Of a stretch of DNA of 64,000 nucleotides, positions 1,935 through 22,300 are shown in pieces (position 1 is the first letter of the stretch; each line of letters begins with the position of its first letter). The stretch lies in the NCBI GenBank assembly GCA_021613535.1, contig CP075494.1, positions 10,726,001-10,790,000 of the forward strand, read 5' to 3'. Below the pieces are notes generated by a model that saw only the letters and a list, made by a program, of their open reading frames with translations, was not told the DNA's origin and ran no database searches. A program made the translations under genes and the position numbers. The stretch is from Adineta vaga (taxonomy: Eukaryota; Animalia; Rotifera).

Positions 1935-4502
1935 TCACGTTATTTCAGGCATTGATTCCACCTTATCAATGTACGTGAATCGTATCGGATGACAAACTTT
2001 TTTCTTCAATGGACGACTCTGTTGTTTATGTTTTTTACAATATTTATCTGTTGGATTGATATGGAAAACATGTTCCAAAATATCGAGAGCACCAACGAAA
2101 ACAAATACACCAACTATAAATATGATTGCAACATATCCAAATGATTTCGATACCATCTGAAGAGTAGCTAATGTATTTCCAGTGATCTCACAATGTCGAC
2201 CAGAATAACTCTTTGTTAAACATTCACATTCATAATCTTGCAATGTCGATCGACACACACCCATATTCTGACATGTCACATTCCAACAGTGATTGATCAT
2301 TGTTTCACAATGCACACCTGTCCATCCATTTGCACAGTCACAAACATAATCACTATTACTCACATTGATACAAGTGCCTAGAAAAACAATAAAGACATAG
2401 CTTGTGAGTAAGAAAAGAATGATTTGTGGAAAACTACTATTATGCCAACAAGTATCTGGTTGACATGGTTGAATATCGTGTTCACAATGAGTTCCATTGA
2501 AACCAGATGAACACTGACAGAAATAACCATCGGATGTAGTGTTATCGGTGATGCATTTGCCTTGATTTTGACAAGGCTGAAGTATATCACAAAGAGTACT
2601 AGAAATATTGCATGATGAACCAATAAAAGAGGACGATGGGCATGTAGGAAGGATAAACTTAAACAATGATTCAGCTAAAATGGTAAGAAAGAAACGATGA
2701 ATTTGAGTGTAAATTTGCAGGAACTAACTTTGTGTTATGGACGTTGTTGGATATGAAGCTGTGAAAAGAGTTGAAGATTCTTTGTTCATTTTTGAAAGAT
2801 GTTCATCAGTTGTGGTCATTGGATGAGTGATTGTTGTTATGTCATAAATTCGTGTGGTTTGAACAGAAGCTGTAACATCTGATGATCAAAATATATAGTA
2901 GAAATAGCTATAACTTACTAGTTTGTTTTTGTTCCAATGTAGTTGAAATCGATAATAGGGTGGAATCTATCAAATGAAATTAGTAGGTTAAAATGGTCAC
3001 TAATTCTTGCTGAGAATATGTCTTACCCATTACAGTTGACGTCAACATCTTCTGAATAGTAGTTGTAACAATTGATGCGGGGTGAGTAGGAGCTAAAAGA
3101 TATCGTCTGTACAAAAGTAGAAGAAAATAAGCAACACACTTATTATTGGATGTATCGTTGTTGTGATGATGGATGAAAACACTATATTTATCAAGTCATA
3201 TGCATCATTCAATATTCTGATATACAACTTACCAACACTTGTTGTTATTGGAATAATCGATGTTGTGCTTACTGTTAAAGTAGATTCAGCATGTGTTGAT
3301 TGAACAGCAACTGTTTCGTTATAATTCAAGATGAGAAATAAAAAAAAAGAATTTGAAACAAACCTGTACTGGTTTTTTGTATTGTTGTCACAATGGTTGT
3401 GAAGATAGATTCTAAACACCGGAACGAACAGAAAATGTCTGCGACTAATAAGAAATGAGAACTCACCGATAGTGGTTGTCAGTACTGTTGTATTTAAATT
3501 TTGTTGTATTTGATTATAAACTGAAAACGAGAGGACATATCATTACTCATCATAAGTTTCAAGATGGATGAATTCTCCATAGAATAGACTCAAAAATAGA
3601 AATATCTTAGTTCTAAAGAAACTCACCGCAAGAATTAATGGAGAGAGAAAACTTTTGAATTCTATTATTGTCATGATCGGTTACATATATATTTCCGTAA
3701 CTATCGAAACTGAGACTTTGTGGTTTCTTTAATTGATATAGTTTGTCGCCATCTGTATTAGCACATCCAGCCAAACAGCGAAATCCATTTGGTCCTGATC
3801 CTAATATTCGATGATTGTCCGTATCGGCAATATATATATAACTGTCTCCGTCGAGAATCACTCCTTTAGGATCAGATAAAGTAAACGATCCTGTTACTAC
3901 AGTTGTACCATTTGGATTATTTAAACTGAATCGCTGAATTCTATTATTGTTTGAATCTGCGACGTACAAATCAAAATTAAAATCAACAAATATTCCTCTA
4001 GGTTTATCCAGTTGGTATGGTTTATTGCCATTAGACCCTGTTCCAGCAGCATCGACTAATGATGAACTATTGAAATTCAACGACTTCTTCAGAACTTTGT
4101 GTTTAGCTTCAATAGAACAATAGAGATTGTTGTACAAATCAACAAATAACGCATCACATCGCTCAGTAACTACCATCACTGTAGCACCACTTGTGGCATT
4201 AACAGACCATTTACTAACAATCTTATTATCTTTTCCATTATCTATATAAATATCACCAGTTGTGGTAGCAAAAATTCCTCGTGGTTCTTTTAAGCCATTC
4301 GAAATAGTTCTTGATAAACTAATATTACTATTATACCAAACTAAAACACGATCATTTTTTTCATCTGCGAAGTAGATTGTATTATTTGTATTAATGAAAA
4401 TACCAACAGGATTATCTCCGATATCGTTTTTCTCTATCAAAGTGGTTGCATTAGGATTCCACGTTGCATTAGAACAGAGTCTTGGCAAATTATATGAAAC
4501 TA
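1935..4502 (-). CDS. Receptor A: NHL beta-propeller, S/T-rich micro-exon stalk (7 exons), 3 EGF-like domains, TM helix, basic cytoplasmic tail; first (signal) exon not resolved
   Basis: NHL exon 4502-3627 (PRGIFVD..LYVADSNNNRIQRF repeats). Stalk exons 3520-3467, 3411-3364, 3310-3233, 3181-3140, 3092-3027, 2966-2919, 2878-2729. EGF/TM exons run from 2674 to the stop at 1935. Confidence 0.8.
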
Positions 4503-5284
4503 CTTTGAAGAAAAAAAATACACATTTTCACGAATACTTTGAGAGCAAAACGAATCATCAGAAGTATTATGAATATACCATAATCGTTTTCTGATTTATC
4601 CACGGAAAATAGTTACAAACGAATGTTTTTGTTTTTGAAAGTTTTTCTTAGTATTAACATATGACAACGAATAACGAACAACCACTATATTATTCATCAG
4701 TAAATTCATTTCATCATAGTTTTACTATCTCCTAAAATACTTCGATTTTCTAGGGTGAAAACATACCAATATTTTGACCAAAACATATCATACTCTTAAA
4801 TATGATACTCCGTAAGATGATTTCCATTTTATGCATCTGTAGTTCTTATGTTGTTGTATTACGTACTTCACGAACAGAAAATGTCCTTATATACTAGTAT
4901 CATTGGCGTATAAAAATTTTCTTCGATCTTTATTTATGTATGAATTTTTAATTACAAAATAAGGTAGACTTGTTGATTCAACATACGATTGAACTCCAAA
5001 CAAAAAATAATTATTATTTATGATAAATACTATAAATTCAATTCAATAGTTTGCCTTTTCTCCGGACAAAAACCAATAAATTTTAATCAATAGTTTGAAT
5101 TTTTATGTACCTCATCTGACTTTTGTTTTTCTTAATATCTTCCTACGGAAGTAGTTTTCTCCTCAAAAAGCAATCTTCTTCTAGAATTATCAGCAGATAA
5201 GTATATTGAGTCGATCAATATTTTATTCAATAGCAAATAGTTCTCATATTCTCGTTTTTTTTTAAAGAGATAGATATTGTATCT

Positions 5285-10153: not shown

Positions 10154-11156
10154 GTTTTAGTTTTTCTTTCGACTCAATGAAATAGACGAGAGACAGAGAT
10201 TATGGGTGTGCGACTGATAAGGTTAAAAAGAAAATGTGGACTTGTGTCATAAATAATGAAAATAAATATCTACTTTTTCTTTTGTTCTTCAATGAAAGAA
10301 ACTTTTCGATTTTAGAAGAAAATGAACAATAAAATATTTTGTTATCGTGTGATTTATGAAAATATAAGCACGAGTTTTGTCGGATTATCACTGTCAGTAA
10401 ATAACATATCAAGATATGTGAGACATAGAAGAACTAGATTTGTCACAAGTGATGTTTTTTATCAATATTTGAGTACTGCAAAGGTTAGAGTTTGTGAATG
10501 AATTATTGTGATCTTTAGTAAAGATTCGAGGATCATGAATGAAAATATTTCTTTCTAGGTCAGATGAAATTCTTTTTGGAACAAGTGAAGATTACAAGAG
10601 AAATCGAGAAATAAAATCAATAATTATATAATGAAATTCTAATTGTTCTGTGAATATTTATACCATTAAACACATAGAAAATGTCAGGTTTTATGTTAAA
10701 CTGAAATATAGACAATCATTCCTTTTTATTCAAAACTTAGTGGCGTCTATGTCAGAAATGGAGAAACCCGCATTTCTTATGTTTGTTTATCAACGGAACT
10801 AAATTGTTTTTAAGAGAAAAAATATTTAATCTCGGTCAATAAATTTTTCCTGCATCTAAGTTTTCTATTTTGTTTGTCCAAGAAATTGAATTACAGATAC
10901 ATTCTTCGGAAACAGAAATAGTTTTTGGAAATTATGTTAAATATTATAAGTCTTCAGGTAAATAACTCAACTTTATTTGTTGTTAATATATATATATTAG
11001 TATTTTTTCAAATTGTTGCTCAGTAACGTTCTTTTCTGGATCAATTCAGCTTGAAATGTAATTCCGTGTCGAGAGAATGTTTAATATTGGAAAGGTATAT
11101 GAGATAATTCTGAACAATTTTTCAAATATATTTTTGTAACTTTGATGTAGTCGAAT

Positions 11157-14100
11157 ATGGTGAAAACAATATTATTTATTGTCCTGATTCTATCGGTTGA
11201 TTGTCATTTCAGTAAATAATAATATTATAATTAAATCTAAACAGTTCATGAACTATTTTGCTTTTCTTCATATCGTATAGATGTTTCCTACAATCAACCA
11301 ACATTTAGTCCATGTGCGGAATGGAGTACTATTGGTACTACTTTCGTTAATCAACCTACAATTGGATTTGATTTTGCCGATATTTTTGTTGATACGAACA
11401 ATACGATTTACTTTGCAGATCAATCAAATAATCGCATTCTTGTATGGTTAGCAAATGATACAAATATCTCAAGAATTATTACAGATGATTTATATAAACC
11501 TCTTAGTCTTTTCGTCATGTTAAATGGTGATATTTATATTGATAATGGTTATAGTAATGACAGAGTAAATTATTGGACATTGAACAAAACAAGTAATGTG
11601 TCTGGATTAACTTTGCGAGACAGTTGTTATGGCTTATTTGTTGATTTAAATAATACATTATATTGTTCGATAAAAAACGAACATGTCATTTATACGATAT
11701 TACTGGATATTGTCGGAGCAACAGCTTCCATCGCAGCAGGAACAAAGCAAAGTGGATCAAACTCATATGAACTTGAAGAACCTCGAGGAATTTTTGTTGA
11801 TCAAAATTTTACTTTATACGTCGCAGATTCAGAAAACGATAGAATTCAAGTATTTTTTGCCGGATTAACATCTGCCTTAACTGCATCAACAGGAACAATC
11901 CGACTTAATACACCAACAGACGTTGTTCTTGATGCTGAAGGAAACCTATTTATTGTGGACTCAAAACAAAATCGCATTATTAGTTCAGGATCCCTTGGAT
12001 TTCGCTGTGTCGTTGGATGTAATCCTGGAACATTAGTCGCCAACAATCAGCTAAATAAACCACAGGCTTTCAGTTTCGATAGTTATGGAAATATGATTAT
12101 AGCCGATAGAGGTAGTCGTCGAATTCAAAAGATTTTTTTAACAAGTAATTCCTGTGGTAAGTTAATTGCGATGATCAAAGATTCTTTGTAATTTAAAATA
12201 TCTTACAATATGAAGTTCTAAAATATATCAATGAATAAAATCAACTTTTTAGTTTATAATACAACAATAATTTCAACAACAACAACAACGATCGCAAAAA
12301 CAACAACAACAACTACTGGTGAGTTTCAATGTAGGTGAACGAATAATTAAAAACTTTCTTTCAAACAGAATTGGCTTTCCTATCAACCGATGAAATGAAC
12401 ACAGGTTCGTTGTTGCTACTGTTTTTTTTTTCATTTGCGTGTACAATTTAAATTGTTCAGATGCACTGAAGTCAACAGTACAGGATGAAACAACATCAAT
12501 CGAAATGATCACCGATAAAGACACTTCAATAGCGAGAATTTCTGGTACGTTCTTCCAAGAGGAAAACATTTATCAATGAAATTATGAATCAATAAAAATC
12601 TGTATTATATTTGATAGATACCTATTCACAATTTGAAACGACAAGTGCAGATGATGAATTGAGTACAGGTTAGTTTTTGTATCATTTCTTTCAATGGTTC
12701 TATCAAGATTATTTAGATATTGATAAACCAACAGAGGATGATGAGATGACATCATTTGAAACAACATTAGCTGAAGAAATAACATCAGACGAAATCACTA
12801 GTAAGTTTTACTGAAAACAAAAAGCTAAGACAACCACTCATTATTTTATTGAATAGATTCATTTATATCATCAGAGATTAGTCTGTCAACAGAAGCTGAT
12901 GATAAATCATCTATCGAAGCAACTATAGACGGACAGATTTCAACAGAATTAATTGAAGGTATTTACATTGATAAAAGTCATTCATACATCAGTATCATTT
13001 TAACTAGACTCAACCGAGATATCAAGCATAGCAATAACATCAGATGAAACAGATTCAGGTATGCTATTACTTTCTTTCCTCTTTCAGTTGTTCATTTAAA
13101 ATGATTTAGTTTCTCAAAAATCAACATCAATGGATGACATAGCTCACATCGAGACAAGTCCAATTTTAGAAACTACACTTGATTTAGGTAAATAATAGCT
13201 TACTAGTATGTATGATCATATCTCAGTTTTACTCTATTGTATAGATACAAGTCTAATATCTACAATGGAAACTCAAACAAATGCAGGTGAAATATGAATT
13301 CGTTTCTTTCCTATAATAATAAATTAATGAAAACTATTTAGATTCCATTGCTTCTACGATCATTGATCAAACGACGCTAGGTTTGCAAATAGTTTTTTTT
13401 CATCCTCTATTAACTGACTCTAAAATCATATAGATTCTACTCAATTATTACAAAATGATGAATCAACAAAAGAACTAATCATCAGTAAATTTAGTAGTAA
13501 ACTTTATTCAATCGAATTATATTCGTGTTCTTCTCTTTAATAGGTTCAAGTATGTCATCGACCATAGAACAACAACCAGACACGACGACTAAAGGTTTGT
13601 TTTTCATTGTTTTATTTGAGCTATTCAGTTAGAACCATTTAGAATTAACGCAATCAACACTTAACGATGATATCGAAACGTCAACTCGAGAGATAATGGC
13701 AACAGATAGTGAGTTTATTTTAACATTAATTGAGCATAGAAGGAACGATTATATCTATATACTATCATCATTTAGTTGAGACATCAACATTGGACATAAC
13801 AACAGAACAAACAAGTATAGTTGAATAATTTCTTTTCTGTTTTCGTAATTTGTTCAAATGAGTTTATATAGGTCCCCCAACGTTCACATTAAAAGATGGT
13901 AGAACAAATTCGACTTTTGAAATTCTTTCAAGTGCCAGTAAGGATGATGTTCGAGAACATTCAATGAAACCATGATAAGAATTTGTTTAGATTCAATTCT
14001 CTTGACAACAATGAAAATGAAACTAGATGCAGGTTAGTTGCGACCTTTTCTGTTTAATGTACCAATGAATATTGTTTAGATTCGAGTCTATCAACAGAAC

Positions 14101-16176
14101 AAGAATATTCAACTGTAATCCGTATAACTAATGATATAGAAATTACAACAAGTACTGGTATGTTTTTGATATAAAATAATGAATAGACACATCATTTATG
14201 AAGTTCTATCAAAAAAATCTGATGCTTTTATAGATACAAGTTCATCTTTTACAAGGACCACAGATATAACAGATAAAAGTTAGTTTTTAGTTAATTTGAT
14301 TAGCTGTCTAAGGATAATTATGTAGATTCTACGGGAACAATACAAAAAACTGCTTTAACAACAATTGAAACAACAGTAAATCAAGAGATTTCATCTAAAT
14401 CAATGATCGGTAAGTTTTCTTATTTAAATAAAAGTTGAATCAACAGTAGATAGCAAATGTTAAATGATGTTCTATCTCAATTAATAGATTCAACAGTGTT
14501 GTCAACGGTGGAAATATTCACAGATAAAACAGATGCTGGTTTGAATATGTTTTTGTGCAATATATATTTTTCTTCACACAATATTGTTTAGTGTCGACCC
14601 AAATAACGGAAAGTTATAATACGATAACTATAGAAACCTCATCAGTTCTACAATCGACAGAAATTTCAGGTGAGTGTAAGCAAGAAACAATCAACCCCAC
14701 TGATTCCATTTCATAGACGCCAACATATCATCGACAATGATAACATCACTCGGTAAGTTTGAAGCTAAAAAAAGCAAAATCAGAAATATAAATAGCTCTT
14801 TTCCACAAAAGCATATCAGATAGTAGGTTTCACATCATTCTAATTTATAGATTCTGTTGTCTCATCATCATCAAAGACAACAACGTCAACAACGTCAACA
14901 ACGTCAACAACATCAACAACGTCAACAACATCAACAACGTCAACAACGTCCACGTCAACAACGTCAACAACGTCAACAACATCAACAACGTCAACAACGT
15001 CAACAACATCAACAACGTCAACGTCAACAACGTCAACAACGTCAACAACAACAACGTCAACATCGTCATCAACAACGGCATCAGTTGTCTACAGTTAGTT
15101 TTATTATTAGCAAACTCTCATCAAATTCATTTGTGATTCTATTTTATAGATTCAACTACGTTGTTTCCGTTAACAGCAACAGTGAACCAATCCATACCAA
15201 GTTAGTTATCTCATATTTTCCTCGAGTATCTATCAATCATACATTGCTTTAGCTTCGCTTCATTGAATATCACCCTTACTCACACCCACATCCTAAGTAA
15301 TAGTACTAACTCAATTCTTTTCTCTCATTAAATGACCTATTTTATGAATTCATCGATCACATATTTTCTTATTATGGACACGGGGGGATGTATATATTTA
15401 TTTGATTCTAGTTTCATCAATTGCTAGTTTCATTCCACCAACGTGCAATTCTTCGTCTATGATTGGTACATTGTGCAATATCTCTAGTGCTCCTTGCGAC
15501 GCTCTCAATCCATGTCAAAATTCAGGCAATTGTATTAATAGCAATAATTATGCAGGTGGTTACAGTTGCATGTGTTCTGCTGGCTTCAGTGGAGCTCGAT
15601 GCGAATTTGACATTCGCGCATGTAAACCAGATACCTGTTGGAATAATGGTACGTTTTAAAGAATATGGTTGCCTTTAAAAATGAAATAGACTTTTGTCTA
15701 ATATAGGTAGCTGTACTACTAATAACTCTCAAAATACTTTCGTATGCGAATGCAAAGCGGGATGGGCAAGTATTCATTGTGAAACTATTGTGAATCATTG
15801 TTTAAATGTGACATGTCAAAACCAAGGTATATGTCGACCATTACATCAGGATTATGAATGTGAATGTTTACGTGACAAGTATTCGGGTCGTCACTGTGAG
15901 ATCATTTACGGTGGTTTAATTGTTCGAAGGATCCTTGCGAAATCAATTGGTTATATTTCTCTTTTATGTCTTATTGCAACAGCATCATTTATTGTTATCT
16001 TAGATATATTACGCTATTGTTTTGACATTGATCCAGTTCTTGCTGAACGTGAACGCATGCAACGTAAGAAAGCACTTAAGACAAAGAAAAAATCCCGTGC
16101 TACTACCCATGTGCAATACGTAAATAAAAAACCAACACAACCGAAGAAACTGGAAACAATCGTAGAAGATGTTTAA
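11157..16176 (+). CDS. Receptor B: signal peptide, NHL beta-propeller, about 538-aa mucin stalk from 24 micro-exons, 3 EGF-like domains, TM helix, basic tail
   Basis: Exon 1 reads MVKTILFIVLILSVDCHF. NHL exon 11281-12156. 24 in-frame phase-1 exons between 12253 and 15200. EGF exons from 15412. TM SIGYISLLCLIATASFIVIL. Stop at 16174-16176. Confidence 0.85.
14872..15076 (+). repeat. Coding tandem repeat (ACAAC[GA]TCA)n encoding (Thr-Thr-Ser)n inside stalk exon 14851-15093
   Basis: The 9-nt unit is directly visible. Splice phase puts it in the TTS frame, not the poly-QR or poly-LT frames of the ORF track. Confidence 0.9.
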
Positions 16177-16353
16177 GGATATGAAAAAAGAAAGAAAACT
16201 TATATTGTTTTAGTTGTTGTCATTGTTTTATTTTCTCCGCGAATTCGAAACCAATCTGTTGCTTATGTGATTTGAAATTGAAATTAAACAAAAATCATTT
16301 TAAACTATAAAAATTGATTTATTCAAAAATCAAAAGATAAAAAATATAAAAAT

Positions 16354-19300
16354 TTAAGTTTTAGCACTTTTTATTCGTAACATTCTAACTGATGTCGAAG
16401 GGGGTTGTGTTGTTACACCTAAATTTGTAAGAAGCTCTTCTGTTAATGGCGTTATTTTTTCAATATGTACATTCGCAGTTTGTGGTCGTTTCATTGACGA
16501 TGTTGTTTGAAGACGTGAACGTGTATTCGTCAAACGTTGTCGATCACGTAGATACATAGAATTCGATGTCATCGGACGATTACGTGTCAAAAGAATTTGA
16601 TAAGGTGTTACTGGTCGTGCTGATGTTACTGTTCGTGAATTTTGTGTCATCATAGATGGTGATAGAAGATTATTTGTTCCATCATTTAATACAACTTGTT
16701 CAAATTCTTCTTCAATTTCATTTAAATTCGTACGTAAAGTTTCAACTTGATGAAAAGCATCAATTTTCAACGAACGTTCCTGTTCTAGTTTTTTCTTTGT
16801 TTGCATTAAATCTCGTTTGACATAAGCTTGTGCTACTTTCATCGCATGATTTTCTCGTTGAAATTCACTTGTTTTCTTTTCTAATTCATGATCTTTCATT
16901 ATCAATTGATTACTTTGTTCTTGCATCCAACGTAGTTTTGTTTCAATGATTTGATTTTGATTCAATGCTTGACGTAAATCACTAATACGTTCAATATTGG
17001 CTTTATTTTCTGTTTTACTTTCTGTTTCAAAGATTTTCTTATATTGTCCTTCATTAGTAGTTATACGTTTTCGTAAATAATTATTTGCTTTTTTCAATGC
17101 TTGAATTTCTTCGACTTGTTTCGTTGTTTTATAAACATAACGTTTTTGATGTTGATGTAATTCATATTGTAACTGTGCAATCGTTTTTTCTAATTCACTT
17201 TTATGTCGACGATATTCACGTTCAGTTTCTTCAATTCGTTCTCGTTGTATTTTTTCATCTTGATAATGTTGATCATGTAAATCTTCGATTAATTTCGTAT
17301 GTTTATTATGAAGATCATCAGCAATCATCTTTGCACTTGTTGCTAATTTTGTTCGAGCTAATTCATGTGTTTCAACACGAATTGCTTTGATTATCGCGAT
17401 CGTATTAAGAAATAATTCTGCACGATATTTTTCAAATTCTGTACGCAACTGTAGATTCGTTTCTAGTAAATCTTGAATTTTAATTTGAAAATTTTCACGA
17501 ATATGAATTAATTCTTTATCAAATCGAAGTTGTTTATCAATTTGTAGTTGGCCATTCAATGAACGAAGTTGAATAAGTTCATTAAGAAGATCAAAATAGG
17601 CAGATAAGGCGAGTAATTGAGAATCAATTTCCATTGTATATTGTTGATCTTGAAGTTGAGAACGAAGTGATTTCAATTCATTATCACGTTCAATCATTGC
17701 TTGACGAATATTATAGAGAACATTTTCATAATAACTACTATAATTCACGTAATTTTCACGTTCACGTTGCATTAGACGATTACCAGCTTCTTTTAAACAT
17801 ACTTCTAAATCACTTCGACGAATACAATAAACATCTGTTGATCGAAAGGAATTTGATGACGTGATAGTACTCTCGGTGTCTTCTAGAAAGAAACAAACAA
17901 ATAACGATTGTCTTTGAAAATATAAGAGTTTATTCTTACTAGAATTATCATTGGTAGAAGGTGAATTAGGTGTTGATTGTTCATCTTTATATTCATATTC
18001 TGATAACATTTGACTAAATTCATCTAAGATATTTGATCTTAATACCGAAAATGTTTCAGTAAATTGTTGTTTTTTCCATATATCAGTTGGAATACTACTT
18101 TCTTCTCGAAGTCGTTCAGATAAAACAATTGTTCGTTCTTTTTTCAAAACTTTTAATGTATCAGTCATCATAAATTTTCCTTCTAATTCAATTAATAATC
18201 GTATTACTAATGCATGCTTATATTCATATTCAGTTACATGTGGTGGTAATTGCCCATTGACTAGAGCAACTGGAAAATCATTATAAAAATTACTATGTCC
18301 CGTTGTTATAGACAATTGTCGTAGAATTGGACTGCGAACTTCATCACGATAACTAATAAATCCATCATCGAAGATTTTCAATGTATTTATTGCAGCAACA
18401 TTTAGTTTAGCAGTACACCAAGCATATCGAATAAGTTCAAAGCGAATACATTCAATAATGTAAAGTTCAAGATGTAAATAATTTGTTAGATATTCATCTG
18501 TAGATGCCTAAAGAGATTGATTTCATTGATTAGATAGACAACTCGCACTATACTATTTACCTCTTTTCGACGTAGAATAGTTGTTGCTAAATCATTTGTT
18601 TTCTTTGGTTTAACAATATCTTCAATATTTTTTAACATAACTTGTGTGGAAATAAATTCCGTATTGGCTAATGCTAATTCTTGTGGTTTCAAACCAATTA
18701 AACATAAATGAATGAGATCAATCAAGGCATATGTCGGCCACGAAAGTCTTTTTGCATTGATATTATATTGATATTCATGTACTGTCCATGGATAGAATTG
18801 TTTTGCAGATGCTTGAACAGGTAATAATGGTTCAGGTAAAATCGAATAGATCGGTCGATAACGATTGAAATCACTAACAAAATTTTGTAAAACCGGTAAA
18901 GAATGAGAACGAAGATTATTGAATGCCATTTGGTTTTTTCCTTTGAGAAAACAATCTGGAATAAGATATCCTATAGAAAAATAGATTTGAAAGATTGTTA
19001 AACGTCGTTTCGTTTCTAGAAGATTCGCAACATTTGATAATGATGTAGACGATAATGAATGAATTTCTTGTTGAATTTCATGTAATTCAGATGCAAATTC
19101 ACCACTTTGATCAAATGTTGATAATTCATTCGTTCGTTCACTAACTAAAACATAGAAACAAATGAGTTGCTTTATATATTTCGAGAAAAAAGAAAAATCT
19201 AATCTTTTACATCGTTGTTCCACATTAGCTACGAGTGCATTCAATTGCGCATAACCAACAAGTATATGAATGAGATCATTAAATGATGATATAATACGTA

Positions 19301-22300
19301 GAATATCTTGTAAACGTTTCTGTAATTCATTCAAATCTAATTTAAGTTCACGAAAGATATTTAATTGTTCTAAAAACGATGGAATATACCAAAGATTAGC
19401 AAGTTCGGTTCCATTTTCATTTAATAAGCTTTTCGGTCGATGTTTATAACCATTACTGGTTAATTCTTCTGCGATCACAGATGATGAAACATTTGAATCA
19501 GATTTTGAAGTTATTGCTGCTGTTGGTAGAATTACAGGTATAGGTTTTGGCCAAAGAAAATGTGATCGACTTGTTAATGGAAATTGTTGTAAAAGATGAG
19601 TTAAACTTAAATAAGCTTGAATAATTTGTAATCGTAGAAGAATTAATGTGTTTCGTTGATGAATACGATTGATGAAATCATTGAGAAGAGAACGTTTTAA
19701 TTTTTCAGCTTCACGTACTTGTTGATATTGCATTGGTTTTGAGTCACGTTGACGAATAAATTCCGTTAGCATTGCATTACGATAAGGTGTTTTTTCGAAT
19801 TGAATTGAAATAAAATAATTCTCACGAAAAAGTTTACGACGATTTGTTTCATTGAGAACATCGGTTAGAAGAGCATTCGGTTGATCAATTTGTGATTTAC
19901 CTAGATGAAAGATTAAAATCTCCTTCTCTTTTACGAAACAATTAAAAAAAAAGTTACCTGATGTTGGTCGTTTTCCACCTGATGAACTTTTTGTTTGTTC
20001 GGTATTTGTATTCAATTTCGTTGCTTTTAATTGTTGTGCAATACATATAATTGCTATTCGATGTTGTAAAATTGCTGAATAGATCAAATGATTATGCATT
20101 AATTGTAATCGTAAAACTGTTTTGAAATTATTGATTGCTTCATCTGCATCATTCATGTAAGCTAACCATTGATCTTTTTGTCGAAAATTCATTCGTCCAA
20201 TTGTACCTTCTTCTAATTCATGTATAGCAAATAATAAATGCTGTTGACCAGTTATTTTATCTAATTGACCATCAACTAATTGACTGGTAATATGATGATT
20301 ATCTGTACTGATATTTGGTAAATTTCTTGATTGTGCAAATTCAAATTGAATAAAACGTAAGGATAAATGTGATTGATCAATCGACATAGTATCCAATTGT
20401 TGTTTATAAACTGTTGTTAATAGTTCTGTTTCACTTGCCGAACGAATTAAACGATAACGCAATGTAACTAATTCAATTAGATTCGAATTTAATTTTAAGT
20501 ATTTTTCATATTGTTCTTTTTTTGTTGTTCGAGCTTCATCAACTTGTTTAAGAATTTCATAGGCTAATTTACCCATCATGGATGGATGATCACTATATAA
20601 TGTATTGAAAATATCACGCTGTTGATTAGGAGAATACATTGAACCTGGTTGAGAAAGTTTTTTATATGATGCAAAGATTTCTTCGAGATATTCAAGTTCA
20701 TAAATGAGTTTTTCTGTTAAAGATAAATTTGTTTGTCGTTGTAATTGTTCGAATTCTATTAATTCATTAAAAGAATTTTTCAATATATGTGGAAGACGTG
20801 TTAACGTTGAAAGTGATTCAATAAATTCAAAAAGATAATAACTATGCATTTTTGAAATACTTAAATAAATTGGTGGTGAAGTTTGTATTCGTGTCGATGG
20901 AAAATATGCACCATAATCGGTTGTATCAAAAAGATTTTCAGTTATTTGTCGCATATCATTTACATGACGATCGATATATTCACGAATAAGTGAAAGATAT
21001 TGTTCAAGATAACGAATTTCTAATGAATAGGAATGAGCAAAATACTCATCCGTACGAAAGTCAATTCGTGGACGACGAACACTAATATCTAGAATTGTTT
21101 GAGCAATAATATGACGTTCATCCTGATCGAATGTATGTTGATAGATTTCATAATAACAATCGATTAATTGACGTTTTAATTGAAGATAAATAAATTCATA
21201 TTCCCAAAGATTATAAAGAATTTCAAATCGATCCATTTTTTTGATAGATTCACTATCGTTTGTTGTTTTTTGAGATTTTAATGAAGCTTTCTCAAGAAAA
21301 TAGGAACCAATCGAAATGATTTCTTGTTCAAGTTCATTTAAATCATCAAATGAACAATCATAGATAATATGTATTCCACTTGGATCTTGAACATGAATAA
21401 TTGATCCATCATTTTCAATCGTTGTTTCATGAGAAAAATCTTCAATATTATCAATATGTTCTCCCGATTGCATATATTCTAATGTATCAAGTGTACATTC
21501 ATGTGGAGTATCGAATAGATATGTGTGTGGAACATAATTATTAAAACGTTGATCGATAACTTGAAGATCTTTTCCTTTAGTTGAAATTGTTAAACGTTGT
21601 TCATAGATAGTTATAGTTCGTTGTAATGAACGAAGATAATTAAATTCATTTAAACAACGATAACGAAGAGTACGAATACGAAGTAAACGAAGTATTAAAT
21701 AGGATAATTGTAAACCATACGATTCCGATGCATCATTATTTTCTGTATCATTATCACGATTTTGACCGGATGTATCATCAAGACCAAGTTTTTGTAACGT
21801 TTCAAGATAATTGAATTCATCTCGTTTCATATAATGATTTGAACGATTCGATGAATCTTGAAAATCATAAGAATCTAATTGAAACAAACAAATTATGATC
21901 TAATCTCGTATACTATTTTCGAGATAAGAGTATTTTTGATACAATTCATCGTTAACATTCGAAAAAACTTCTTTCATTATTTAGCCGCATGTAAAAAAGC
22001 AACTACAAAAGTTTACCCTCGTAGCAATTTGAAACGTTAGTTTATTCTAAAATGACCTTGAAGGTATCTATAACTAAGTAATCAATTAAACAAACATTTG
22101 CATCGACCTATTCTTCTACTTTTCATTTTGAGAAATTTTACCTTGTAAATCATCATTATCTTGATTATCTTTGCTGTTTTCATCTTCTTTATTTGTTCCA
22201 TTTTCTGAATTTAAATCAAAAATATTCTTCCAAAAGATATCACTCATTGCCACAGCTCGGGCTGAATTTGTCGTTGAAGCATCTAAAACTAATTTCGCTG

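Follow-up and report, generated by a model that had tools for sequence, protein, structure and literature searches.

Gene structure of the locus

The window analysed here is a stretch of 64,000 nucleotides of the Adineta vaga genome (GenBank assembly GCA_021613535.1, contig CP075494.1, positions 10,726,001 to 10,790,000 of the forward strand); positions are counted from its first letter. At 11157-16176 on the plus strand lies an intact, transcribed gene whose product is a type I membrane protein of 1083 residues. When the exons of the 28-exon model were joined by a script, a 1083-aa open reading frame with one terminal stop was obtained, in the order signal-peptide exon, NHL exon, 24 small exons encoding a stalk, EGF exon, and EGF-TM-tail exon (Table 1). 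All 26 internal exons, including the NHL and EGF exons, are phase 1-1, as in the cassette architecture of the tropoelastin type. The 24 small exons hold 1614 of the 3252 coding nucleotides, and about half of the coding sequence lies in the large domain exons. The single-pass type I topology is seen in the hydrophobic N-terminus encoded by exon 1 and in one C-terminal membrane helix; the hydropathy maximum (19-residue window) was 2.57 at residue 1011, and a basic tail follows.

Table 1. Exons of the gene and the tandem repeat in the stalk, with their evidence
Feature	Position	Strand	Description	Evidence
Exon 1	11157..11211	+	ATG and hydrophobic signal peptide MVKTILFIVLILSVDCHF; phase-1 end	sequence; RNA contig joint 11211/11281
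NHL exon	11281..12156	+	876 nt, phase 1-1, predicted six-bladed propeller	Pfam, AlphaFold2, Foldseek
Stalk exon 1	12253..12318	+	66 nt	3' joint in RNA contig, 5' joint absent from contigs
Stalk exon 2	12369..12404	+	36 nt	both joints in RNA contigs
Stalk exon 3	12461..12544	+	84 nt	both joints in RNA contigs
Stalk exon 4	12618..12668	+	51 nt	both joints in RNA contigs
Stalk exon 5	12717..12800	+	84 nt	both joints in RNA contigs
Stalk exon 6	12857..12958	+	102 nt	5' joint in RNA contig, 3' joint absent from contigs
Stalk exon 7	13008..13058	+	51 nt; 67% identical to exon 20	sequence model only
Stalk exon 8	13110..13187	+	78 nt	sequence model only
Stalk exon 9	13245..13286	+	42 nt; 67% identical to exon 16	sequence model only
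Stalk exon 10	13342..13380	+	39 nt	3' joint in RNA contig
Stalk exon 11	13434..13484	+	51 nt	both joints in RNA contig
Stalk exon 12	13544..13594	+	51 nt	both joints in RNA contigs
Stalk exon 13	13643..13708	+	66 nt	both joints in RNA contigs
Stalk exon 14	13776..13814	+	39 nt	both joints in RNA contigs
Stalk exon 15	13872..13937	+	66 nt	both joints in RNA contigs
Stalk exon 16	13991..14032	+	42 nt	both joints in RNA contigs
Stalk exon 17	14080..14157	+	78 nt	both joints in RNA contigs
Stalk exon 18	14234..14278	+	45 nt	both joints in RNA contigs
Stalk exon 19	14326..14409	+	84 nt	5' joint in RNA contig
Stalk exon 20	14488..14538	+	51 nt	sequence model only
Stalk exon 21	14592..14669	+	78 nt	sequence model only
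Stalk exon 22	14717..14752	+	36 nt	sequence model only
Stalk exon 23	14851..15093	+	243 nt, (Thr-Ser-Thr)n	3' joint 15093/15150 in RNA contig
Tandem repeat	14878..15074		9-nt unit CAACAACGT, about 23 copies, inside stalk exon 23	Tandem Repeats Finder
Stalk exon 24	15150..15200	+	51 nt; 211-nt intron to 15412	5' joint in RNA contig; no RNA joint for the following intron
EGF exon	15412..15648	+	237 nt, phase 1-1	Pfam EGF 28.6 bits (cut-off, 21.5); joint to last exon in contig
Last exon	15707..16176	+	two EGF-like modules, membrane helix ISLLCLIATASFIVILDIL, basic cytoplasmic tail with YVN motif, stop	Pfam EGF, hydropathy, tail alignment

The preliminary description of this DNA had proposed 24 GT-AG exons, all phase 1-1 and free of stops, between the NHL and EGF exons. 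Between 12156 and 15412 every one of the proposed lengths was located, with AG before and GT after each exon, and together the exons make up 538 codons with zero stops. The introns between them are 47-98 nt long, and the last one, before the EGF exon, is 211 nt. Half of the exons share a start motif, TAG followed across the exon boundary by AT(T/A)C; 12 of the 24 start with Asp, and nine with D-S or D-T. With a model trained on this gene, a splice-chain search with the phase unconstrained recovered the same 24 exons (score, 737); in 20 shuffled versions of the gap it reached 74-134, and the phases of those chains were mixed. When the window was scanned for phase-1 chains, a single long chain was found, of which the 25 links were the 24 stalk exons and a false start located in the NHL exon; chains in shuffled windows had at most three links. 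The splice-site scores of the stalk exons were unremarkable, and no decayed "ghost" exon above the splice-score thresholds was found in the longer introns.

Domains of the protein

Database searches and fold prediction were performed with single exons or with public paralog proteins, and the joined 1083-aa chain was used for frame and composition. The NHL exon matched the Pfam NHL family (PF01436) with 50.2 bits (cut-off, 20; E = 1.9e-13). Its fold was predicted with AlphaFold2 at a pLDDT of 89.9 and a pTM of 0.90, and the best Foldseek matches of the predicted fold were the six-bladed NHL propellers of Pizza6, PknD, TRIM2/71, and Thin (E, 1e-17 to 1e-12; TM, 0.7-0.9); the NHL exon product is predicted to be a six-bladed propeller. 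Among cluster representatives, no protein identical to this product was found (best single-domain match, 55%), and word-index searches with the NHL exon, under a length filter, and with paralog P0085 likewise yielded no public protein model of the present gene. In the two exons after the stalk, PF00008 (EGF) gave 28.6 and 24.3 bits (cut-off, 21.5), and 22 cysteines lie C-terminal to the stalk. The domain order originally described, an NHL propeller, a Ser/Thr-rich stalk, EGF modules, and a membrane anchor, was upheld. A teneurin was also considered and rejected: TEN_NHL (25.6 bits; cut-off, 27.1) and EGF_TEN (22.1 bits; cut-off, 65) both stayed below threshold, and the type II topology of teneurins differs from the type I topology here, given the N-terminal signal peptide.

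Character of the stalk

The 538 stalk codons specify 27% Thr, 19% Ser, 10% Ile, 8% Asp, and 7% Glu, in accordance with the richness in S, T, D, and E noted before. The stalk has neither Cys nor Trp. The only tandem repeat in it is the (TST)n stretch of exon 23. For the paralog P0085, the AlphaFold2 model has a pLDDT of 22-46 in the stalk, which is flanked by a confident propeller and confident EGFs, and a helix at 621-656. A folded head, a Ser/Thr-rich stretch, and membrane-proximal EGFs are the usual layout of an O-glycosylated stalk, and the stalk of the present protein is probably disordered and O-glycosylated.

The term "mucin" used for the stalk at first holds for its Ser+Thr content (46% of the 538 residues) and fails for the Pro-rich tandem repeats of mucins. 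Pro occurs only seven times in the 538 residues, Ile makes up 10% of them, and the acidic residues (84 Asp+Glu) outnumber the basic ones (21 Lys+Arg). In these respects the strongly acidic stalk is unlike classical Pro/Thr/Ser mucin domains, and it might be, instead of a glycosylated mucin-like rod, an acidic disordered region that serves in cation binding or adhesion or as a shed or cleaved linker. We regard this as unlikely in view of the Ser+Thr content, the lack of Cys and Trp, and the placement of the stalk, with a folded head on one side and EGFs near the membrane on the other.

Transcription and splicing

The RNA evidence consists of contigs (2-6x depth) of four runs from two studies, in which rare variants drop out; the runs are presumed to be RNA because spliced joints are present in the contigs. 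Of the 25 introns that flank stalk exons, 15 showed GT..AG joints at exactly the predicted boundaries, in agreement with the exon model proposed beforehand, and joints were also found for the gene's first intron and its last. Twelve of the 24 stalk exons (2-5 and 11-18) were confirmed on both sides. Contig coverage is absent for exons 7-9 and 20-22, and ten stalk introns have no RNA support (12157-12252, 12959-13007, 13059-13109, 13188-13244, 13287-13341, 14410-14487, 14539-14591, 14670-14716, 14753-14850, and 15201-15411). The multi-exon contigs (exons 1-6, 10-13, 12-16, 16-19, and 23-24) are all consecutive. Most of the array is thereby covered, and in the transcripts seen each stalk exon is joined to its neighbour, with none skipped.

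A rival reading, built on the earlier suggestion of a combinatorial, length-tunable stalk, is that one gene yields many stalk lengths through regulated or combinatorial skipping among its 24 symmetric exons. The formal basis of this suggestion is sound: any subset can be skipped in frame, all exons being phase 1-1, and skipping creates no new stop because no stalk exon ends in T. CD44 and tropoelastin are precedents for the cassette use of such exons, and six exons and ten introns of the stalk are missing from the contigs. The count of exon-skipping joints was zero in the contigs of the four runs, with exons 7-9 and 20-22 uncovered and minor isoforms liable to be missed, and the only long-range joints lay in (ACA)n low-complexity sequence and had no GT..AG ends. 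The contigs join neighbours only, and the ordinary splice-site scores also speak against cassette use, which we consider very improbable.

Family in Adineta

The gene belongs to an NHL-EGF-TM family of about 45 members inside a far larger expansion of NHL exons; in the A. vaga genome, NHL exons number at least 134 and EGF-TM exons about 45. NHL expansions in A. vaga have already been published (PMC3846280). The closest NHL exon in the genome is 48% identical. When NHL-EGF-TM genes were tabulated for stalk exons, 21 paralogs had 0-7 small Ser/Thr-rich exons (0-256 aa), nearly always phase 1, at the stalk position, and the present gene had 24 (538 aa); it is the long extreme among the paralogs examined. 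The stalk was entirely phase 1 in 17 of the 21 paralogs by a search free in phase, which matched the public protein models exactly in three of four checkable cases. Stalk length varies between germline paralogs (0-24 exons); among the transcripts seen, no such variation was found.

Paralogs P0085 (I4U23_025351) and P0148 have the same plan as the present gene (signal peptide, NHL exon, phase-1 Ser/Thr-rich exons, EGF, and EGF-TM-tail) and tail motifs in common with it. P0085 is a neighbouring paralog. In the tail alignment, the Tyr motif is conserved. A relative in Adineta steineri shows the same design with at least eight stalk exons, all phase 1; exon-by-exon orthology with it was rejected, since the matches were compositional or motif-level only and not collinear. 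In the literature on rotifer micro-exons and bdelloid NHL repeats, we found neither this NHL-EGF-TM architecture nor any micro-exon stalk of a rotifer described.

Origin of the exon array

Stalk exons of the same length were 43.6% identical, against 34.5% in codon shuffles (P < 0.002), two exon pairs (7 and 20, 9 and 16) reached 67%, and the recurrence of exon lengths had a P of about 0.002-0.01. These values favor the origin by exon duplication that was put forward at the outset. A recent duplication was rejected: Tandem Repeats Finder detected no repeat on the exon-intron scale, local alignment of exon or intron pairs gave none above the shuffle maximum, and no other genomic copy of the stalk DNA was found. 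Duplication of multi-exon blocks was likewise rejected, since a matrix of z-scores for all exon pairs shows no diagonal. Most likely, though the similarity between exons is weak, the array grew by repeated old duplication of exon-intron units, which then diverged. Because every internal exon is phase 1-1, an added exon had to be symmetric and of phase 1. Tandem duplication of symmetric exons that encode disordered regions is a general pattern already published (PMC3632108).

Many intron gains into one continuous Ser/Thr-rich exon, for which the weak exon-to-exon similarity and at least one paralog with its stalk largely in one exon (L062, 639 nt) could be cited, are a highly doubtful source of the array, since independent gains would be expected in all three phases and the stalk-flanking introns are phase 1 in 25 of 25, and since same-length exons are significantly alike, lengths recur, and the start motif is common to half of the stalk exons.

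Comparison with known systems

All splice sites of tropoelastin are phase 1:1, and its exons are cassettes (bioRxiv 10.1101/2024.12.03.626628). The present gene resembles it in the long run of small exons, the low-complexity extracellular protein, and the phase 1:1; tropoelastin, to which it has no sequence relation, differs in being secreted into the matrix and in its alternative splicing, which is extensive and well documented, whereas no skipping was seen in the present gene. Symmetric phase is obligatory for exons between phase-1 introns, so the uniform phase 1 is expected, as known from tropoelastin. The stem of CD44 is encoded by ten consecutive cassette exons, v1-v10 (PMC6982006). CD44 and the present protein share the type I topology of a surface receptor, a binding head folded at the N-terminus, and a stem of consecutive small exons, glycosylated in CD44. 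However, CD44 has a Link-module head instead of an NHL propeller, its stem exons are alternatively spliced whereas those of the present gene are consecutive in the contigs, and there is no homology between the two.

The likeness to schistosome micro-exon genes (MEGs) drawn in the preliminary description fails for several of their defining features. MEG exons are 3-81 bp long with introns up to 5 kb, and their products are described as secreted (PMC10526429); their coding region is mostly micro-exonic, they vary by alternative splicing, and they are apparently restricted to platyhelminths (PMC4350168). Many very small symmetric exons and a signal peptide are common to MEGs (PMC4350168) and the present gene. 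Unlike MEGs, the latter has introns of 47-98 nt, half of its coding sequence in large exons (1614 of 3252 coding nucleotides being small-exonic), a 1083-aa membrane protein as its product, and no splice variation seen.

Interpretation

We consider it quite likely that the stalk is a long spacer that arose by old exon duplication and is spliced consecutively, and that it is not a splicing-based variation system. The protein consists of a signal peptide, a predicted six-bladed NHL propeller, an acidic Ser/Thr-rich stalk of 538 residues, three EGF-like modules, a membrane helix, and a short basic tail with a conserved Tyr motif. The stalk is encoded by the 24 small exons between phase-1 introns, most likely descended from exon-intron units that duplicated repeatedly long ago and then diverged. 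Since the transcripts seen join neighbouring exons and skip none, the stalk would serve as a spacer of constant, large length that keeps the propeller well away from the membrane, and length differences would arise between paralogous genes, not isoforms.

The design as it stands follows known rules, namely phase-1 exon shuffling and symmetric exons for disordered linkers. It provides an RNA-backed example of an animal lengthening the stalk of a surface receptor through small symmetric exons, in an extreme member of a large uncharacterised family of bdelloid NHL-EGF-TM membrane proteins. A bolder proposal, which we think improbable, is that stalk length is a used variable of a recognition repertoire of about 45 paralogs that would present diversified propellers at germline-set heights (0-24 exons), the longest member perhaps skipping blocks of exons under conditions outside the four runs, such as infection or recovery from desiccation. 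If stalk height were functionally tiered, or if skipping occurred under stress or infection, this would bear on the diversity of surface recognition in an asexual animal without adaptive immunity.

Gene model and transcript evidence

Each of the 24 exon lengths proposed in the preliminary description was sought between 12156 and 15412 with AG before and GT after it, and all 24 (numbered 1 to 24 in 5' to 3' order) were located there; read in phase 1-1 as had been proposed, they give 538 open codons with zero stops. The window is AT-rich (G+C about 30%) with short spliceosomal introns, and those of the stalk measure 47-98 nt with ordinary ends of the GTAAGT and TTTAG types. The 28 joined exons (3252 nt) encode 1083 residues with one terminal stop only, and all 26 internal exons, including the NHL and EGF exons, are phase 1-1. 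Candidates for a hidden exon in the longer last stalk intron were tested by splice-score thresholds, and none passed. For the NHL exon, a 24-sequence alignment gave a high-confidence prediction of an all-beta propeller fold (pLDDT 89.9, pTM 0.90), and the closest structural matches of the model were six-bladed NHL propellers.

A splice-chain dynamic programme in which any phase was permitted returned the identical 24 exons with a score of 737, against 74-134, with phases always mixed, for 20 shuffles of the 3255-nt gap, a comparison that is partly circular since the focal gene was the training gene. Outside the training set, all-phase-1 stalks were predicted in 17 of 21 paralogs, and the prediction equalled the public protein model exactly in three (P0085, P0002 and P0148) of the four paralogs for which a model was fetched. 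When the whole window was scanned for phase-1 chains, the stalk array was the single long chain; shuffled windows gave chains of three or fewer. The same scan chained five symmetric exons at 19979-21088 on the minus strand.

Contigs of four runs from two studies (depth, 2-6x) were aligned to 11000-16400; the runs are probably RNA, a guess with which the spliced joints, hard to account for in another way, agree. Of the 25 introns that border stalk exons, 15 showed GT..AG joints exactly where predicted; exons 2-5 and 11-18, twelve in all, are supported on both sides. Unbroken single contigs spanned exons 1-6, 10-13, 12-16, 16-19 and 23-24, and none omitted an exon within its span. Combinatorial exon skipping, as previously claimed, found no support: no skipping joint was listed for these 2-6x contigs across 11000-16400, which lose rare variants and covered neither exons 7-9, 20-22 nor ten introns. 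Long-range joints (for example, 12291 to 15033) were rejected as skipping events, having TC..CG ends inside (ACA)n low-complexity sequence that is common to highly expressed unrelated transcripts. Alternative splicing of the stalk exons may yet occur in the focal gene, but is improbable.

Features of the focal gene and its relatives (window coordinates unless a contig is named)
Feature	Position	Strand	Remark
Signal-peptide exon, 55 nt	11157-11211	+	ATG + hydrophobic; upstream of stalk
NHL exon, 876 nt	11281-12156	+	upstream of stalk
Stalk exon 20	14488-14538	+	AG/GT-flanked, listed length
9-nt tandem repeat CAACAACGT	14878-15074		inside exon 23; about 23 copies, 69-nt higher-order period; encodes (Thr-Ser-Thr)n
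Last stalk intron, 211 nt	15201-15411	+	about 4x usual; outside introns with RNA joint
EGF exon, 237 nt	15412-15648	+	downstream of stalk
Last exon	15707-16176	+	two further EGF-like modules, membrane helix, basic tail; downstream of stalk
Tail, distal motif form HVQYVN	15990-16176	+	alignment with paralog tails
Joint, signal-peptide/NHL exons	11211/11281	+	GT..AG in contigs
Joints, exons 1-6	12318/12369, 12404/12461, 12544/12618, 12668/12717, 12800/12857	+	GT..AG in contigs
Joints, exons 10-16	13380/13434, 13484/13544, 13594/13643, 13708/13776, 13814/13872, 13937/13991	+	GT..AG in contigs
Joints, exons 16-19	14032/14080, 14157/14234, 14278/14326	+	GT..AG in contigs
Joint, exons 23-24	15093/15150	+	GT..AG in contigs
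Joint, EGF intron	15648/15707	+	GT..AG in contigs
P0085, hypothetical protein I4U23_025351 (Adineta vaga), 699 aa	about 1947-4570	minus	neighbour paralog, NHL-EGF-TM gene
Tandem-NHL member L052	G000:C1:12526900-12531500		NHL exons before stalk and EGF exons
Tandem-NHL member L047	G000:C1:12071400-12074800		NHL exons before stalk and EGF exons
Tandem-NHL member L057	G000:C1:11771100-11774500		NHL exons before stalk and EGF exons

Stalk length in the family

NHL expansions in A. vaga have been published (PMC3846280). At least 134 copies of the NHL exon were scored in the genome out of 930 candidates, the nearest among them being 48% identical, and EGF and EGF-TM exons were also present at about 45 loci. 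The interval from the last NHL exon to the EGF exon is 60-1103 nt in 21 paralogs, with 0-7 small Ser/Thr-rich exons, versus 3255 nt in the focal gene. Some intervals seem long because the NHL exon is present twice or three times in tandem (L047, L052 and L057), and at L062 (P0148) the stalk lies mostly in one 639-nt exon. The P0085 gene, head-to-head with the focal gene and 6.6 kb upstream, has seven phase-1 stalk exons (54, 48, 78, 42, 66, 48 and 141 nt). AlphaFold2 models the propeller and EGFs of P0085 with confidence, and the pLDDT of 22-46 for stalk residues 315-484 fits with disorder.

The propeller of the partial Adineta steineri protein CAF4243577.1 is 55% identical to that of the focal gene, and threading on its 2130-nt contig gave stalk exons that are phase 1 throughout (75, 48, 204, 51, 78, 42, 78 and at least 41 nt); the micro-exon stalk design is therefore common to Adineta species, and the focal gene is its long extreme. 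Such stalks also recur in the A. vaga genome, as judged from sequence only, since a 12-exon phase-1 Thr/Ser-rich chain (first exon, 114 nt; remainder, 18-36 nt) lies at L066:3966-5121 (G000:C5:14414965-14416120).

Origin of the array

Had the stalk introns been gained many times independently, they would not share phase 1 throughout, as they do; constraint is therefore the best reading of the uniform phase. Under the classical exon-shuffling rule, an exon inserted between two phase-1 introns must itself be symmetric phase 1. Symmetric exons have been tied to disorder and tandem duplication (PMC3632108), a pattern that the uniform phase of the stalk matches.

The exon duplication previously proposed is most likely an old event. 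Recent duplication was ruled out by repeat search, pairwise alignment and genome uniqueness: Tandem Repeats Finder gave nothing beyond the 9-nt repeat of exon 23 and a short one within exon 1, local alignment placed no exon or intron pair above the shuffle maximum, and no further copies of the stalk DNA were found in the genome. Weaker signals point to old duplication, namely the recurrence of exon lengths beyond uniform or smoothed nulls (P about 0.002-0.01), the identity of ungapped same-length exons (43.6% versus 34.5% in codon shuffles, P<0.002), the 67% identity of exons 7/20 (51 nt) and 9/16 (42 nt), reached by no shuffle, and a TAG|AT(T/A)C start context, giving a split Asp codon, shared by half of the stalk exons. 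Through slippage in the exon-23 repeat, individuals or alleles could come to differ in the length of the stalk. Contigs of other (ACA)n-rich transcripts cross-map at this repeat at high depth.

Proposed function and comparison with known systems

In the proposed arrangement, the NHL propeller would be presented atop a long acidic Ser/Thr-rich spacer, probably disordered and O-glycosylated, beneath which lie three EGF modules and a single membrane helix. An extended glycosylated mucin domain is assumed to measure roughly 0.2-0.25 nm per residue; if similarly extended, the stalk would reach about 100 nm, far beyond those of the paralogs. As a mucin stalk, it is Ser/Thr-rich as proposed (T 27%, S 19%, I 10%, D 8%, E 7%) but departs from classical mucins in its scarcity of Pro (only 7) and its net charge of about -63. 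The tail of the focal protein has two motifs in common with most paralog tails (L043-L062), one of MDILKYCFGIDP type in the juxtamembrane part and RF.Y(V/I)N distally; a basic run also recurs among the paralog tails. The family may therefore have a signalling or trafficking role in common, and the distal motif may be a Tyr-based signalling or sorting signal.

The likeness to schistosome micro-exon genes (PMC10526429, PMC4350168) fails in intron length, micro-exon share of the CDS, protein type and observed splice variation. Closer analogies are tropoelastin, phase 1:1 at every splice site (bioRxiv 10.1101/2024.12.03.626628), and CD44, whose stem is ten consecutive variant exons (PMC6982006), although both are alternatively spliced, and no such splicing was seen in the focal-gene contigs.

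The original observation is confirmed and its interpretation partly supported. Within an uncharacterised family of rotifer receptors, the focal gene adds a new and extreme case of an architecture whose kind is known; its significance would be more than modest only if isoform diversity or a role for stalk height were demonstrated.
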